DNA of 32,000 nt from NCBI RefSeq assembly GCF_000400465.1, contig NW_008806292.1, positions 60,001 to 92,000 on the forward strand. Direction: 5' to 3'. Under the pieces are notes generated by a model. It did no database searches. It worked only from the letters and a program-made list of their open reading frames with translations, and was not told the origin of the DNA. The number at the start of each line of letters is the position of its first letter. Positions within the stretch are counted from its first letter, which is position 1. The position numbers and the translations under genes were made by a program. Shown one piece after another: positions 3,194 to 19,064 of this stretch. The DNA is from Wallemia ichthyophaga EXF-994. Its lineage: Eukaryota; Fungi; Basidiomycota.

Positions 3194-4870
3194 GGAAATT
3201 AAAGTTTTGTACAAGAAGCAAGAAGGTGTTCTTAAGATAATTGAGTCTGGTTTTGAATTCAAATCCCTCAATTCCTTCCATGTGGGTTTCGACAGGTTGA
3301 ATAGTGGGTCACGTCTCTAGGCGTAGTGTCTGTCTAATCAAGTACACCAGCGCTCTTTGCTAGCAAAGCTGGCTCTACGCCTGTTAGACTCAAAGTTGAC
3401 CTGCTCGATCCACAGCAGTCGCTGACGTTCACCTTTATCCACCCCACCAACGCCTTGTCTGAGCGAGAGGCGGCCAAAGAACAGTTAACCCAGGCTATAG
3501 CGGGCAATAGAGCGCGTGCCAGTAGCCAGATTGATCGTCAGGTTAGTGGTTCTGCCGGTACCTCAGCTACCACTTCACCCCACCCTGGCCTCGGTCTCTC
3601 CAAAGTTGACTTGGAAATTCGCAAGAAAGTTCTTGTAAAGGATCCTCAATTGGCTAAACTACACAGAGATCTCGTCATAGGTGGTGTGATAACAGAGGAC
3701 GAGTTCTGGCAGGGCAGACAGCAACTGCTACTACTCGAGCACCTCTCAGCATCCCAAAAGCCCGGCAAACCATCCACGCTAGTTGACCCTCGCCCGACAT
3801 CCTCCCAAGCCGGTGAATTCACAATAACGATAACTCCCCAACTAGTCCAAGACATATTCCAAGAATACCCCGTTGTGCGCAAAGCCTTTATAGAGAATGT
3901 GCCTAATCCTCTCGCCGAATCAGATTTCTGGATAAGGTACTTTCACTCACATCTATTCGCGCGTCATCGGGCGAGCTCACGGGTGGATGCGAATGACGCG
4001 CGCAACGACCCCGTCTTCGACCAGTATTTGGAGGAGGCAGATGACGGGCTGGAGCCGCGCCACGCACAGCGCCGCGTCTATGACCGTCTGCTCGACCTTG
4101 GCAGCACGCAAGCGGACCACGACGCGAGCGGCAACGCACTCGACATAACCATGCAAGCGGGAAAAGTAAAGGCAGCGCTGCCACTCATGCGTCGCTTCAA
4201 CGAGCATTCGCAGCGTCTTCTCAGCGCGACGGTGGGCGATGCGCCAAGTGTACAGGGTGAGTCGGGCGCGCAAGACAACTACACCCAGCAAATTCGCATC
4301 GATGATCTCGAGCACCACCAGGAGGCTCAGCCAGTTCGCCTCAATATGAAGGACCGCGAGCAGTACTACACAAATATGATACTCGATGGAGAGGCGGGCG
4401 GCGCGTCTGCTTTGCAGTCTGACACGCCTCACATGCTGGACACCGCCCAACTTGCTCATAGCATCAGAGAGGGCTTGGAGGAGTGGGATGTGCTGGTGCG
4501 CGCTGATGATATTCACGATACTACACCCGCCACGCGCGAAATAGAGGACGGATTGCGCTCGACTGCTCAGATCGCCGCGCATGATACTGGCGCTGCTCAT
4601 GTAGCCACCTCTAACGCTATGAAAGCTGCCATTAGCTGCCATACGGCGTGCACTGAGTTCCTCCGGCTCTACTGGTCCAGTAAGTTGTCGCAGCCGCGTG
4701 ATACGGGGAAAGTGGATCGTATGGTGGATTTCATCAGGAAAACACCGTCGAAAGTCGACGCAGTTGTCAAGAAGGCGCAGACTGTGCATGAGGCTGATGT
4801 ACTCAGACAGGCTCTCCAGCCTGTTTTGAATGGCGTTAAGAAGGTGCTGGCTAATGAGCAGCAGGTGTGA
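3192..4870 (+). CDS. TFB1: TFIIH subunit Tfb1/p62 (PH domain plus two BSD domains), 543 aa
   Basis: Exons 3192-3303 and 3351-4870 (47-nt intron gtgggt..ctaat..ccag). The PH start MEIKVLYKKQEGVLKI continues in frame to TLFASKAGSTPVRLKV. BSD motifs ITEDEFWQGR and AESDFWIRYFHS. Confidence 0.9.
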
Positions 4871-4947
4871 TTGTATGTATGTGTATTATGTATTTATTCT
4901 TGTTTTATGTATTTATTCCCATTTTACATCCATCTACGATAACACTG

Positions 4948-4957
4948 ATGACGTCAT
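4948..4957. promoter_or_regulatory. ATF/CREB (CRE) palindrome ATGACGTCAT upstream of ATE1
   Basis: Perfect 10-bp palindrome in the 150-bp TFB1-ATE1 spacer, about 64 bp before the ATE1 ATG. Confidence 0.45.
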
Positions 4958-5020
4958 AGAGTTTTTTTTTGTTGTATCATCTCAATTCATCTACCTTTTC
5001 CCGTCGCCATCTCAACGACG

Positions 5021-6541
5021 ATGTCATCGATAATCGTACCAATTGGATACAGCGGGAGTAGCTGCGGGTATTGCGGGGGAGACGGGCAACGGAGTGAGAA
5101 GGAGGAGAACTACAGCTATGGATTCTGGGCGGTGCAGATGGCGTGTGAGGTGGGTAGAGTGCACATGCATATAGAGACCCGCTAATGCGTCTCAAAGGAC
5201 TACAGACAGCTTATCGATAGCGGGTGGCGCAGGAGTGGTGGATATATCTACAACCCAGACAGATCACGCACGTGCTGCCCCCAATACACAATTAAACTCG
5301 ACGCAGCAGCGTTCAAACCACAGCGATCTCTCAGGCAGGAGCTGCACAGGTTTAATAGGTGGATAAGATTTGGCGGTGATTTGCAGGGTGGAGACACCGC
5401 AGCAGCCACAACAACACCCACAGCAGCACCCAAAGACAAACACAAAGGCAAAAATAAGACATTTGACTTGCTTGAATGTGTAAAGGAGTCCCAGCATGAC
5501 AACCACGCCAACCACAACCTAGAAGTTTCTCTAGAGAGGGCTGGCTACACCGACGAAAAATTTGAGCTGTTCAAGGCTTACCAGGTGTCTATACATCACG
5601 AGACAATATCCGAGCAGCGTAAGGATTCTTTCAAAAGGTTCCTAGTCGATGGCCCACTCAAATACTCACCTATCACCTACAAACACGGCAGACCAGTGAG
5701 CATGCCTTCGCACTACGGTCAATACCATCACGTGTACCGGGTCGATGGTAAACTGATAGCTATGGGTGTTTTGGATATCCTCCCCGAGTGTGTCTCATCC
5801 GTTTATCTCATGTACCATCCTGGGTACCAATCACTCAATCTTGGCAAAGTGGGTTGACTTATATGAGCTATTTGAGCTACTGACCTATCTTTTCCCCTAA
5901 ATCCCCAGATCAGCGCGTTATTTGAAGTCGCACTGGCACTCGAAATGCGCAATGCAGGCGCAGGTGCTGTGGATCTGTACATGGGTGGGTGTCTTAGTGC
6001 ATTTTAGGCGTCAAAAAACATAATTAACTCCACAAACCCACTCTCAGGCTACTATATCCACGACTGCGTGAAAATGAAATACAAGGCCACGTATCAGCCT
6101 TCGTATCTCCTAGACGCTGTGCGTGGAAATATGCATAAGTGGCAATATCAGCTGATTTAGCACCTCCAGGAATCTAACACCTTCTATCCATTTACACAAG
6201 CAGCTGCGATTCTAGACAAACATAAAAACGCATCCTTTGAGCGCGGCGTGAGTATTAAAGTGGATGGAGGTAGTACTCCGGGCGAAACACACAGTGTGAC
6301 AGATAGTGACGATGGCAGCTACTCTGAAGACGACGATAACTTGCCTTCTCCACCTCCAGCTGGTTTCCTCAATCCTCGCGCTCTACCTAAGCAACTCCTC
6401 AATCAAATCAAAATACTCGATAACCGCTCAATGCGTCTACTCACTTACTTCACCTTACCACACTCTTATAGATCTCAAGTGGACGATCTAGTGGCTGCAT
6501 TGGGTGACAAGTCACCTAATTTCGTCATCTTGATAACGTAG
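5021..6541 (+). CDS. ATE1: Arginyl-tRNA--protein transferase (N-degron pathway)
   Basis: ATG at 5021. CGYC, GWRRSG and [11 protein letters not shown]-domain motifs; [28 protein letters not shown] and [17 protein letters not shown]-domain motifs. Introns 5150-5197, 5849-5908, 5985-6047, 6119-6169. Confidence 0.95.
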
Positions 6542-6623: not shown

Positions 6624-8303
6624 CTACCACTGTAAAGTCTGCACAACCAACTGCTCTTCTTTTTCGTTGTTTGCATCCTCATCGCTTTCATCTAGTGTCA
6701 AGTCAATAACCATCGAGCCGTCGTGTGAATTGTCTTGGATGTTGTTGTGTGTGTTATATGTACTCTGTGTGTTGTGTGTAATTTGGGTGCGTGGACTGTT
6801 GTTTTGGTTATTTTGTTCGGTTTGAACATTTTGTTTGCTATGGTTGACGCAGTTACTTGGGCTTGGGTTGACATGCATGCTTTGGCTGACACGATTACTT
6901 GGGGTTCGGTTGATATGATTGCTTTGGTGTACACGGTTGCCTGGGTTAACACAGTTGCTTTGGCTGTTCCTATTCCTGTTAGTGCTGCTTATGATTTCAA
7001 TACTACTACTCCGGCTTCTGTCGCCTTGATCGCCTTCTACAATCTCGCCATCTTCAGCTTCCCGAATTTCCCCTTCTTCTGGTCCAATTTGTGTAGGTCG
7101 TGTTGGCTGCTGTCTCATTCGGGTATATTGCGGCGTACTTGCGCGGTTAGTAATTAATTGGAACAATCTGTTATGAGCACGCGCATGCTTATTTGCATTT
7201 TGAGGTCCTTGCTTGTTATTCTGCATAATGTTCTGTATAATGTTCTGTCTATTCAATTGCATCTTGCCCTGCTTAATATCATGCTCATTGTTTGGCTTCC
7301 TGAATTTCTCTCTCTTATTTCTCGCTTGAGTCTCATTGGTGTTTCTGATTTTATTGTCTCTATCACGTATCTGAGCCACCGCGGAGGGTCTACTTTGAGC
7401 AACCCGGTCTGTTCCAAGAATTTGATCTGTAAGGCTGCTCTCTCTTTCGCGCTTCTTCATCATCCGATCCAACTCGCGCATCCTCGCTTCGTGGCTGAGC
7501 ACGTCTGCGTCCTTCTCCGCCTGCTGCGCATGCTCCTTCTCAGCGAGCAGCCTTCTCTCCTCCTTCTTCCTCCGCTTCCACTCCTTACTCACCGCTTTCG
7601 CGGTCGAGAATGTCTTGCACTTCCAGTCTATGTCTAGATTGTGGTTGCTGAGGAAGGGCATACCGAGACTAACAAAGCTGCGCGGAGTGTTTATCACTGC
7701 GAACAACCTCTCTTCCTCAATCTTGCGCAGCTGGAAAGGCACGCTCACTTGTCCGACGACATCCAACACATTCCCGAAGCTGTCTTCGACTTGCACAGCA
7801 GGAAACAGTGTGTCATACTGTATGCCTGCATACCTAGCAAATTGTATAGACAAGCTGTCAATTGGTGAACCTGAATTTATACCTGCGATTGTCGCAACGC
7901 TGTTAACTAAACATTTCGCTCGTGATGACTGCACTATTGGCTGGCTGGTGTAGAATCTGAACTGCGAAGATAACAGGCTGTCACCCATCCCGCCTATCTG
8001 CTGATTGTGGTGCGAGCTCGGATCTGCTTCTACGTCAGCATTCTTGCGGAAGCGTGGTAAAGAGCCTATTGATGTGGGTATATGGCCACTGTCAACGCTG
8101 AAGAATGACTTGTTCCTTATTTGAGTCTCTGCTGGTGGTGGGGCGAATAAAGAGTGATCTAAACCGTCGAGGTTGATGTTGAGACTATCAACGCTATCCA
8201 GTATCAATGGATCTGTGTACTCCGATGAATGCGTTGGTAGCGTTGGCGCATTTTCCAAAACCGAGAAATCTACCGACGATAACAAATCCGCGTCAGTCGC
8301 CAT
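6624..8303 (-). CDS. Intronless 559-aa protein with a catalytically altered retropepsin (Ty3/gypsy-type aspartyl protease) domain and a long disordered tail
   Basis: First ATG at 8303 (the track start at 8342 is TTG); open to the stop at 6624. Contains VNSVATIAGINSGS..SLSIQFARYAGI and VSLGMPFLSNHNLDIDWKCKTF, matching the retrotransposon protease signature but with N in place of the catalytic D. Confidence 0.8.
   Translation of the reverse strand: MATDADLLSSVDFSVLENAPTLPTHSSEYTDPLILDSVDSLNINLDGLDHSLFAPPPAETQIRNKSFFSVDSGHIPTSIGSLPRFRKNADVEADPSSHHNQQIGGMGDSLLSSQFRFYTSQPIVQSSRAKCLVNSVATIAGINSGSPIDSLSIQFARYAGIQYDTLFPAVQVEDSFGNVLDVVGQVSVPFQLRKIEEERLFAVINTPRSFVSLGMPFLSNHNLDIDWKCKTFSTAKAVSKEWKRRKKEERRLLAEKEHAQQAEKDADVLSHEARMRELDRMMKKRERESSLTDQILGTDRVAQSRPSAVAQIRDRDNKIRNTNETQARNKREKFRKPNNEHDIKQGKMQLNRQNIIQNIMQNNKQGPQNANKHARAHNRLFQLITNRASTPQYTRMRQQPTRPTQIGPEEGEIREAEDGEIVEGDQGDRSRSSSIEIISSTNRNRNSQSNCVNPGNRVHQSNHINRTPSNRVSQSMHVNPSPSNCVNHSKQNVQTEQNNQNNSPRTQITHNTQSTYNTHNNIQDNSHDGSMVIDLTLDESDEDANNEKEEQLVVQTLQW
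6832..6960 (-). repeat. Degenerate 42-nt (14-aa) coding tandem repeat, NRVxQSxHxNxxPS-like
   Basis: SNCVNPG-NRVHQSNHINRTPS-NRVSQSMHVNPSPS-NCVNHS. DNA units ggttgacatgcatgctttggctgacacgattac.. and ggttgatatgattgctttggtgtacacggttgc.. Confidence 0.6.
7608..7920 (-). mobile_element. LTR-retrotransposon-derived aspartyl protease domain, apparently domesticated (no other TE parts seen)
   Basis: Hallmarks: hydrophobic-hydrophobic-[D>N]-S-G at 7869-7877, flap region VEDSFGNVLDVVG, and the LGMPFL..N..IDW C-terminal motif typical of Ty3/gypsy proteases. No LTR, gag zinc knuckle, RT or integrase is recognisable in the flanks. Confidence 0.65.
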
Positions 8304-8637
8304 CGTTGAGAAAAACAAAGCCGATGAAAACGAGTAAGTCAATTAGAATGTAATGTATTTGTATAAACAACTTTAGTCTCTGTTCGAACAACAATTCATG
8401 TTGGATTTTATTTGTAATGTGGAAAATTTTGACACAATGAATATGGAAGAATAGGGAAATATGGGAAAGTAGAGTAAAAATGAGTGTGTCCAGCTACCTG
8501 TAGATGGATGACAAGCACAGCCAAGAAATATGGAGCAAAACGGCGTTTGTTGAGTGTACGTTAGTGAGGCGATATTGAAAATGATGTGAGCGAGTACGAC
8601 GACCGTTGGTTATCGCGATTTCCAAGAAACAATCCTC

Positions 8638-9776
8638 TTAGAGGAAGAGGTAAGTAATGATGAATACTGATATCGCAATACCAGCAACCATTGGCATTGA
8701 AATTCCGTCATGTACTTCCTTGGTAGCTGTAGCTGTGGAGTATCCCGAGGATGATTTCTTTGCCTGAGTAAGCTCATACTCCAACGCCTCAATGCGCTTC
8801 TTTGCACCTGCTAATGTTTCACTATTGTCTAAACCTAATCCCCTCTTAATGTCAGTCTCAGGTACGGGCGGCAAATGAGAAGATGGAGTAGATTCTTGAG
8901 GCAATTCTGAGGCCTGTTGATAAGGAGTAGCTGCGATGAATGGGGCACCTTGAGATCCATTCTGTGTGGACTAAACCCAAGTTAACGTTGAATATCGTGA
9001 AAGTAATCATACTCACACTTGAACGGGCATTGCTGTCAGATGGAGGCTCTTCTTCGCCGACAGTCTCAAATTGAGTTGATTTCCAATTGCAGCGTATCTT
9101 TTGCTCGATGACGGCTGTCTTGTCCTCACGCTCGATTTGTGACCACTAATAACGCGTTAAACGAGTCAAATATGAGCAATGTACCCACAAAATCAGCGAC
9201 TGAGAGGGATTGCCTAGATTCGTTGATGTGCACGGACTGCACAAGGAACTTATCCTTGCATTTCGTACCTGGTGGGGGTGCTTCCTTGACAGCTTGTACG
9301 AGTACTATAAGTCGTGTAAGCTGTGAGCTTCCATTTCCGTAAGATCGCACCTTGTATATCGATAGTCTGGCCAGGTTCTATTCTTCCAGCGTTTGGGCGG
9401 ACGCAGTAGCTCTTAGAGGAGTGTGAGCGAGCGTTGAGCCTATCTCAACTGACAAACTCACGCGTGGAGCTGTAGTCTTAACCTTGAAAGCCACTGGAGT
9501 TGCCGTCTACGATGTTAGCTGTTAGATATACCAGAAACCTCGAAAGCTTAGGAAACTTACAGGGTTCTTGATTTTGAGCATTTGCTTATCAATCGCAGTG
9601 CCAACCTTTACATCTGGAGATGCAAGCGGACCTTTTTAGTAGTCGATTAGAGTTGAACGGCTTTAGGTGGTTCAAAACGTACGTGGAAAGATGAGCTCTT
9701 TGGCTGGTTCAAGTGTAACGCTCCTGTAATGTGTAAATACGCGCTTTTACCTCCATTTTCCACGCCAAACTCACAT
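8638..9776 (-). CDS. SCS2: VAMP-associated protein (MSP domain, C-terminal transmembrane anchor)
   Basis: Eight-exon model: [61 protein letters not shown], then a coiled coil and the TM tail VAGIAISVFIITYLFL. The start codon is split AT|G by intron 9774-9724. Confidence 0.9.
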
Positions 9777-17433: not shown

Positions 17434-19064
17434 ATGGCACCAAAGGTGCGACCAAGACCGCGGGCACGGCAGCATGAGCCGGAAGTGGATATTATAAGCA
17501 GTGGCAGTCCTGGTGGTAGTGGTAGTGGTACACAGGCGCGTGCATCAACTTCGAAATCGACCACGCCAACTCGAGTCACAGCGATGAACAGCGCGGATAA
17601 GATTGTTGACAATGATGATTTCTTTATTCGTAATACAGGCGCAATGTGGAAGCGCAACTTTCTCAAGTCTGCCAAGCGTACGCGTGGTGATGAAGAGCAG
17701 GAGAAGAATGAAGATAAGGATAAGAATGGCGTGATAGATTTATCTTCTAGTAGCGAACATTCATTCACCGACGAAGACGACGATAACCCCGCGTCTAGTT
17801 CACCCGTATACGGTGAGAACGAAGATGGTAGTATGCCTGAACGACCACGACGCCGTCGCAAGCGAGCAAACAACATCAAACAGCACCCCTTGCCTGAATG
17901 GACAAATCCCAGAATACGAGGGCAAAAAATGGTTGCACAGGGTGGCCAACACACGCTTGTGAATGCTTCTGAGACTTTTGAACAACACTTTGAGGACGAT
18001 CTCGACTCACAGGTTGAAGTGAGGGATAGAAAGGACGATAGCGGGCGAGGATCGTCGCACGTAGAACTCACACCTCCACCAACGATCATATCGCGAACGA
18101 CGGTGACGCGACCGCTTCAAAACGTCTACGAGCAAAATGAGAATGAGGAGGAGGTATTCGACTTGACAGAAACGGTGAATCTCAACCCAACTCTTCTGGC
18201 TATACGCGAGAACATGAAGAAGAACCCAGCACCTCAGACTGTCAGTGCTGGTACCGGACCTGAGATAATCGATATAAAGTGCAAGATTATCATAAATACA
18301 CGTGCGAGCAAGAAGTACACAGGAATGGAACAGCACGATGCGATGCAGTTCGGCGAGCTCAACAAATCATTCAGATACAGACGCGCGGATAGCTTCGAAT
18401 CGCTGTTCAGATATCTCGCACAGAAGGACGTGCTCAACACACAACTCGATGGCGTCGTCATGACTTATGAGCGCCACAGAGTCTTCACAGGTGCTACACC
18501 TGAGTCACTGAATATGTGGGATAAGGCAGATATGGAGGCGATGACGGCATCGACGTATGACTTTCTCAAAGAAAAGAGACGACTGCAGTACATGGAACAA
18601 GTAGAGAGAGCAAGGTTTGAGGAAGAGGAGGAGCGTCGAAATAGAATCGAGCAGGAGGAGGAAGTTGTTAAGGAGGCAGAAGATCGTGAAAGCAGCTCTG
18701 ATATCGAGTTTGTTGGTGCTTCTCAGAGACCTTCTCTGAAGCAGACTCCACGGCCACCTCCTAATGCACAACCATCTCCTAATAGGATCAGAATCACTCT
18801 GCGTGGTATGAATAGGGATGAGGAGTATAAGATACAGATCCCTGTAGAGAAGAAATGCTCTGTTCTACTCAGCTCTTACCTCACCTACTTTAAAATCGAT
18901 CATGGTCAGGCTTCATCCTATGAGCTGGATTTGAATGGCGATAGATTGGATCTGAATGATGCAGTCGAGAATACAGATCTCGAAGACGAGGAGTGAGTAT
19001 TGTGAAATAACACCATATTTCACTAACACACTGAAGTCTGCTTAACGTAATCAAAAAGCGGTAA
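17434..19064 (+). CDS. ESC2: RENi-family protein with two SUMO-like domains (Esc2/Rad60/NIP45-like)
   Basis: Disordered N-terminus with SIM-like motifs (EVDIIS, VIDLSS, VFDLT). SLD1 FRYRRADSFESLF..MTYERHRVFTGATPESLNM; SLD2 RIRITLRG..LDLNGDRLDLNDAVENTDLEDEDLLNV, completed by intron 18993-19036. Confidence 0.75.

Follow-up and report, generated by a model that had tools for sequence, protein, structure and literature searches.

What does a retropepsin-like domain do in a fungal gene that carries nothing else of a retrotransposon and has an asparagine in place of the catalytic aspartate? The question is raised by a minus-strand gene of the salt-loving basidiomycete Wallemia ichthyophaga EXF-994 on contig NW_008806292.1 (assembly GCF_000400465.1), which lies within a 32,000-nucleotide stretch (contig positions 60,001 to 92,000, forward strand) that was analyzed as a whole and is called the window below; coordinates are window positions unless another contig is named. 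A sequence-only reading had regarded the gene as a domesticated Ty3/gypsy protease whose catalytic Asp is replaced by Asn, retained as a non-catalytic dimerisation or peptide-binding module of a host nuclear protein. Our analysis leaves domestication with loss of catalysis well supported. The best explanation as a whole, which we consider probable though far from certain, is that an exapted Ty3/gypsy protease has lost catalysis and is kept as a dimeric, probably nuclear, adaptor, possibly for SUMOylated partners; within it, the role of a non-catalytic dimerisation or peptide-binding module in the nucleus may be called a reasonable proposal as judged from the sequence. The features at the core of this explanation are:

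6624-8303, minus strand: complete single-exon coding sequence, 559 amino acids (aa) plus a TAG stop (6626-6624)
7596-7955, minus strand: retropepsin-like domain including a conserved leader; these residues, aa 117-236, start with FYTSQPI, comprise the beta-barrel, and close with IDWKCKTFSTAK
7875-7877, minus strand: AAT codon of Asn143, which stands where D-S/T-G has its catalytic Asp; Ser144-Gly145 are kept

The open reading frame (ORF; 8342..6624) opens at a TTG (8342) and has its first ATG at 8303, from which 559 codons follow free of internal stops, as the sequence-only reading had said of its uninterrupted 1.68-kb frame, and the annotation of another W. ichthyophaga strain likewise presents the gene as one 1680-bp exon. 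The peptides quoted in that reading (VNSVATIAGINSGSPIDSLSIQFARYAGI, VEDSFGNVLDVVG and LGMPFLSNHNLDIDW) were all found in the ORF. The domain block it had delimited (7608-7920) is correctly located, but its borders are out of frame by two missing bases, the in-frame segment being 7608-7922 (aa 128-232).

The identity of the domain was approached by sequence, profile, and structure comparisons. An exhaustive phmmer search with residues 100-240 of the query against 1.84 billion cluster representatives returned seven proteins: the query itself, an orthologue (P0009; E 6e-34), three fragments of Ty3/gypsy elements (P0011, P0013, and P0014; E 9e-8 to 1e-5), and two repeat proteins (P0010 and P0012), which matched a short VEDxFGNV stretch and were discarded as spurious. 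All three element fragments carry D-S-G-[AC] and score as RVP_2, gag-asp_proteas, and Asp_protease_2. P0011 and P0014 run on into the start of a reverse transcriptase (protease-reverse transcriptase, PR-RT), and P0011 comes directly after a gag ORF with Ty3_capsid and zf-CCHC domains, so that it belongs to a bona fide Ty3/gypsy element. When the two host orthologues were aligned as a profile with the three element proteases using hhalign, the probability was 99.35% (E 6e-21, 33% identity over 109 columns). Together with the phmmer E-values, this places the likeness to retropepsins far outside what chance would produce. In a five-sequence alignment, the domain is 25-30% identical to the element proteases (34% for the best phmmer match), while the elements are 26-32% identical to one another. 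A Pfam search with the single W. ichthyophaga protein gave a gag-asp_proteas match that spans the whole profile (positions 2-92 of 92), yet at a sub-threshold score (12.9 bits, E 0.17, cut-off 28.2 bits). The AlphaFold2 (AF2) monomer model of aa 100-240 has a core with a predicted local distance difference test score (pLDDT) above 90 and shows the retropepsin fold, i.e. a six-strand beta-barrel half-pepsin with a short C-terminal helix. Foldseek matched it with probability 1.0 to the RVP domains of DDI1, DDI2, and Ddi1 as well as to the HIV, XMRV, and EIAV proteases, with target-normalised template modelling (TM) scores of about 0.65-0.75, and viral retropepsins were also matched in BFVD.

Since the top structural matches are the RVP domains of Ddi1, DDI1, and DDI2, the gene might be taken for a divergent Ddi1-type shuttle protease, a view to which we give scarcely any credence. 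A mixed profile of host and element sequences does reach DDI2, DDI1, Ddi1, and ASPRV1 (the DDI proteins at E 3e-8), but this result depends on the element sequences: a host-only profile found nothing significant among PDB sequences (E ~1) and did not reach DDI1/2, yet it matches the element proteases at the E-value of 6e-21 given above. Hence the closest sequence relatives of the domain are element proteases and not Ddi1, in line with the original proposal. Moreover, no UBL, HDD, or UBA domain was found by Pfam or in the AF2 model, the motif LGMPFL..N..IDW is that of the elements and not the LG(L/I)D.L of Ddi1 alignments, and the identity with Ddi1-type domains is only 15-20% in structural alignments.

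The catalytic D-[ST]-G-[AC] motif is absent from both host proteins. W. ichthyophaga and the orthologue have N-S-G-S aligned to the D-S-G-[AC] of the element proteases, and the codon of the W. ichthyophaga Asn is AAT at 7877-7875, within the context G-I-N-S-G-S, exactly as had been read from the sequence, which had set it against the D-S-G-A of proteases. In the five-sequence alignment, the host Asn falls precisely on the catalytic Asp, with S-G, LG(M/I)P(F/W)L, and IDW invariant or nearly so. An Asp-to-Asn exchange at the catalytic position abolishes activity in family A2 and is routinely used to obtain inactive mutants for crystallisation. It follows from this established knowledge that the N-S-G-S domain should have lost catalysis. 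That it might still be an active protease, using Asn143 or another acidic residue in a non-canonical arrangement, appears highly improbable to us. The S-G of the active-site loop and the second-lobe LGMPFL are intact, and conserved acidic residues (D149 and E173-D174) are located nearby; however, none of these or any other acidic residue aligns with the catalytic position, the known effect of Asp-to-Asn in family A2 speaks against activity, and the best-scoring match among solved structures, a Retroviral-like aspartic protease 1 chain, itself has N-S-G-A at this position and is presumably an engineered inactive mutant.

Whether the gene has been kept by selection was judged from its orthologue (P0009, P0015, and P0016), which is present on ENA and Logan metagenome contigs of 27-30% GC (L001-L004; L002:1-22391). 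The nearest named relatives of its neighbour genes are Wallemia proteins, and the Vps52 of the carrier is 50-53% identical to those of W. ichthyophaga, Wallemia hederae, and Wallemia mellicola, which are mutually 72-79% identical; the carrier is therefore a wallemiomycete outside the sequenced Wallemia crown. The proteins of this lineage are Asn/Asp-rich. Basidioascus was considered as the carrier and ruled out, its GC content being 58%. Over the query segment that holds the domain, the orthologue is 52% identical, i.e. about as conserved as Vps52, while the long tails barely align. It has retained N-S-G-S with the same AAT codon, so that in the only orthologue found, at a Vps52 distance of 50-53%, the Asn is conserved as the domestication reading supposed. 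The nonsynonymous distance (dN, Nei-Gojobori) between the domains of this host pair, which represents two lineages, is 0.41 with saturated synonymous sites (dS); a dN/dS ratio is not computable under such saturation, but a dN of 0.41 beside a saturated dS indicates that the domain is under purifying selection. Outside the domain, the two proteins have in common KSFFSV...LPRF-x-K in the N-terminus, FYT(S/T)Q-x-I before the domain, a basic patch after it, and a terminal L-[VI]-x-[QE]-T-[LI]-[QE]-W, and because such N- and C-terminal motifs are common to both, a single domestication event predating their split is implied.

The length of the orthologue deserves a comment, since it appears as a protein of either 796 or 912 aa. 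A truncation was considered and rejected, as both in-frame TAGs lie inside a 63-nt in-frame intron (L002:12371-12433), which is in phase 0 and has a GTGAGT donor, a CTGAC branch site, a pyrimidine tract, and a terminal TAG; past it, the frame runs to the conserved ...IEW end. The 796-aa database protein ends at this intron, and the 912-aa P0016, which has Gln at both L002 TAG positions, appears to result from read-through in translation.

A decaying retrotransposon remnant, or a spurious gene model with a frame open by chance, could also underlie a locus that strain annotations of W. ichthyophaga label as 'hypothetical protein' only, that encodes a mostly low-complexity and predicted disordered protein, and that has no counterpart in the annotated proteomes of two other Wallemia species. 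We find this very unlikely. The 90%-identity cluster holding the exact protein contains eight sequences, all from W. ichthyophaga and with one accession per strain assembly; 12 positions vary among these allelic proteins, including one indel of a single residue. Only one of the 12 is within the domain, and no allele has a stop codon, the 1.68-kb frame being intact in 8/8. This within-species variation is too low to inform an estimate of selection. Copy number, too, fits a host gene and not a multi-copy family, with one gene per strain assembly and only two orthologue clusters in the 1.84-billion-representative protein library. Against a remnant speaks also the orthologue, which despite saturated silent sites keeps both its 52% identity over the domain-holding segment and the motifs outside it. 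Finally, the locus has no other element genes: direct repeats of at least 30 nt, and hence long terminal repeats (LTRs), are missing from the 32-kb window, and no gag, RT, RNase H, or integrase Pfam domain occurs in the 559-aa protein, in agreement with the earlier statement that no LTR, gag, RT, or integrase is recognisable. At the orthologous locus, the only repeats are coding ones of low complexity.

Domestication would thus have left a protease domain in a protein that is otherwise largely disordered. In the full-length AF2 model, only aa 128-222 (pLDDT 80-94) and a long helix at aa 234-295 (pLDDT ~90) are folded, and the remainder is predicted to be disordered. Five further features stand out in these regions:

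8043-8111, minus strand: KSFFSV-x5-P-x(5-6)-LPRF-x-K motif, aa 65-87, in the disordered N-terminus and common to the orthologue
7419-7604, minus strand: basic patch KEWKRRKKEERR, resembling a nuclear localisation signal (NLS), which opens the long predicted alpha-helix, aa 234-295
6981-7013, minus strand: first motif resembling a SUMO-interacting motif (SIM), RSSS-IEII-SST, aa 431-441
6669-6716, minus strand: second SIM-like motif, SM-VIDL-TLDESDEDAN, with an acidic CK2-like tail, aa 530-545; the orthologue has PE-IISI-DDSDHED
6627-6650, minus strand: extreme C-terminus LVVQTLQW, ending in Trp and predicted as a weak helix; the orthologue has LIEETIEW

SIM cores were defined as [VIL]x[VIL][VIL] or [VIL][VIL]x[VIL] with acidic or Ser flanks, and the tails were shuffled to obtain expected numbers. 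The W. ichthyophaga tail contains two such motifs versus 0.22 expected (P ~0.02), and on this ground it may bind SUMO. One motif of the type IISI/VIDL followed by D-S-D-x-E-D looks conserved between the two tails. The basic patch directly after the domain is also kept in the orthologue, which points to a nuclear location. A GTGAGT is found at 7592-7587 in phase 0, directly after the domain (codons V238-S239); annotators call the gene intronless and the predicted helix spans this point.

These observations led us to propose the following course of events. A protease domain, unaccompanied by gag, RT, or integrase, would have been taken up before the AT-rich sister lineage and the sequenced Wallemia species diverged, and its catalytic Asp, now Asn, would have been lost; purifying selection would since have preserved the domain as the one folded module in a host protein that is mostly disordered. 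Two features whose roles in retropepsins have been described (PMC11402058), Ser-Gly in the 'fireman's grip' and IDW in the C-terminal strand, are conserved, and on this basis the domain may still form the retropepsin homodimer. Without the Asp pair, such a dimer would hydrolyse nothing, and its cleft might serve as a peptide-binding or dimerisation platform from which two disordered arms are displayed, each with the KSFFSV...LPRF motif, the basic NLS-like patch, the SIM-like hydrophobic/acidic motifs, and the C-terminal ...T(L/I)(Q/E)W. On this view, the two arms would make the protein a bivalent adaptor, probably located in the nucleus, whose partners might be SUMOylated.

The same lesion permits another role. 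The retropepsin active site takes one Asp from each subunit, and Asp-to-Asn subunits of retroviral proteases are trans-dominant inhibitors. The protein could accordingly be imagined as a dominant-negative restriction factor, whose dead subunit heterodimerises with an incoming Ty3/gypsy protease, yielding a mixed dimer without activity and thereby preventing the maturation of Gag-Pol. We regard this as unlikely, although several observations fit it: (i) the domain lies within Ty3/gypsy protease diversity, at a distance from the elements similar to that among the elements themselves; (ii) the interface elements SG and LGMPFL..N..IDW are its best conserved parts; (iii) the closest element protease (L007) has an equally low GC content (32%), its sample being a sibling of that of the orthologue-bearing organism; and (iv) the W. 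ichthyophaga genome is very poor in repeats (9.6 Mb, 1.67% repeats, mean intron 61 bp; PMC3849046). However, with about 30% identity to the nearest element, efficient heterodimerisation is probably not to be expected, and the phmmer search yielded no close Ty3/gypsy protease of W. ichthyophaga, so that there may be nothing left to restrict and yet the gene is intact. The domain, compared between two lineages, shows purifying selection and not the behaviour expected of an arms race, and the conserved motifs outside it are left unaccounted for. If true, this would be a restriction factor made from a protease, comparable to those derived from gag, and it might contribute to the extreme scarcity of retroelements in compact Wallemia genomes. 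L007 itself (L007:357-2224, 32% GC) is a Ty3/gypsy fragment in which a gag with Ty3_capsid and a CCHC knuckle ends in a stop and, after 8 bp, a PR-RT opens in a different frame. Its sample is a sibling of the one from which L001 was obtained. Among active-type proteases, that of L007 is the nearest to the host domain, and the element may stand for the donor lineage.

Several results weigh against the adaptor explanation. At the level of the protein, the Pfam score of the W. ichthyophaga domain stays under the gathering threshold, and no Pfam family matches the orthologue; the long helix that follows the domain has no conserved equivalent in the orthologue; and the SIM-like motifs of the D/E/I-rich tail of the orthologue are not enriched (two versus 1.8 expected). 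At the level of the genome, the 22-kb orthologous locus has only the gene itself in common with the window, the two orthologues lying in unrelated neighbourhoods. As regards distribution, only two lineages were found to carry the gene. For W. hederae and W. mellicola, phmmer and word-indexed searches found no orthologue in the annotated proteomes, a scan of JGI metagenomes with back-translated motifs gave 160 pattern matches of which none was confirmed, and the Vps52-linked loci of W. mellicola and W. hederae contain no match, although the contigs end about 0.3-2 kb from the LysM gene. Word-indexed searches for homologues, performed with the full protein and with the conserved region of the orthologue, likewise returned only the query's own cluster. 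In view of these negative results, the gene either is dispensable in some relatives or was missed. In this context, the contigs of W. mellicola (L005:12950-15026) and W. hederae (L006:13057-13387) stop about 2 kb and 0.3 kb, respectively, past the Vps52-LysM pair; the gene of the AT-rich relative occupies this very place flanking Vps52-LysM, which may mark an assembly-breaking region in both genomes.

Comparison with known systems helps to place the gene. With the Ty3/gypsy (Metaviridae) protease (RVP_2/gag-asp_proteas), the host domain is homologous over its whole length of about 108 aa at 25-34% identity, and shares the x-S-G loop, LGMP(F/W)L..N..IDW, and the retropepsin fold. Unlike that protease, it has Asn for Asp, is encoded by a single-copy gene free of gag, RT, integrase, and LTRs, and is accompanied by host-specific disordered arms with conserved linear motifs. 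Ddi1, DDI1, and DDI2, the best structural matches, resemble it in that a retropepsin-fold domain is embedded in a cellular protein, and a further likeness may be seen in flanking modules that read a ubiquitin-like modifier, represented on the host side by the putative SIM-like motifs. Ddi1, however, keeps D-[ST]-G-A, is an active ubiquitin-dependent protease with UBL/HDD/UBA and occurs throughout eukaryotes, whereas the Wallemia gene is devoid of UBL/HDD/UBA, apparently catalytically dead, and confined to wallemiomycetes. A third group comprises the mammalian ASPRV1/SASPase, PEG10, and RTL1/PEG11, lineage-restricted host genes with a protease domain derived from Metaviridae or retroviruses; ASPRV1 and PEG10 keep Asp-Ser-Gly and self-cleave, and PEG10 also retains gag (PMC11402058; PMC7212762), in contrast to the Wallemia gene, which keeps the protease fold only and has lost the catalytic Asp. 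The pseudoproteases iRhoms, Derlins, and CspC offer a parallel for a protease fold conserved past the loss of a catalytic residue and reused for binding or scaffolding, though they belong to different folds and clans.

The sequence-only reading had known of no described fungal gene of this architecture, and our literature search agrees, as it gave no fungal stand-alone Ty3/gypsy protease gene; nor did a transposon-derived pseudoprotease of the retropepsin family in fungi surface in it. Host genes that keep a retroelement protease are few (Ddi1/DDI2, ASPRV1, PEG10, and RTL1); of these, Ddi1/DDI2, ASPRV1, and PEG10 have been characterised, and all of them retain the Asp. The Wallemia gene is a fungal, lineage-restricted case in which apparently the protease fold alone has been retained, catalysis has been lost, and the domain is as conserved as a housekeeping protein. 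It would offer a natural experiment on what a retropepsin dimer that does not cut can do, be it scaffolding, peptide capture, or trans-dominant inhibition of element proteases, and it brings a fungus into the study of transposon domestication, in which gag and transposase cases from animals predominate. The family is tiny and confined to a small fungal lineage; its immediate impact is modest.

The genomic setting in W. ichthyophaga is an ordinary one. The convergent neighbour contains an ATE_C domain according to the domain search and ends at 6541, so that the gap to the protease gene is exactly 82 bp, the spacing to the ATE1 stop that the sequence-only reading had given. In the annotation of another strain, the gene is flanked by a 237-aa Motile_Sperm (VAP/Scs2-like) gene and by an ATE_N/ATE_C gene, with a Sel1-repeat gene beyond; it is this annotated Motile_Sperm gene that settles the Scs2-like identity of the upstream neighbour, for which the single exon seen in the window is insufficient. 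The rest of the window is of housekeeping character (ArfGAP, BSD, dynamin-like, Rad60-SLD, SSRP1/Pob3, Hpt, TRAPPC10, PQ-loop, Mrp51, and CoA-transferase).

Three minor observations concern these neighbours. First, FFAT motifs are ligands of the MSP domains of VAP/Scs2 proteins, and the conserved N-terminal S-F-F-S-V-D-S of the protease gene product (8093-8111, aa 65-71) is loosely similar to a (phospho-)FFAT motif, while the VAP/Scs2-like gene (~8638-9350) is located directly upstream; the flank preceding the motif is basic and not acidic, the adjacency to a VAP/Scs2 gene is absent in L002, and the likeness may be a coincidence. Second, at a distance of about 9 kb, the plus strand has a 520-aa ORF (17434-18996) with a Rad60-SLD SUMO-like domain of the Esc2/Rad60 type at its end, mentioned here solely in view of the SIM-like motifs. 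Third, in strain assembly GCA_004918755.1 (L008:7763-11138, corresponding to 3455-6541 of the window), the ATE1 model is a 1003-aa fusion that combines PH_TFIIH and BSD (Tfb1-like) with ATE_N and ATE_C, and it probably represents two adjacent genes joined by the gene predictor.

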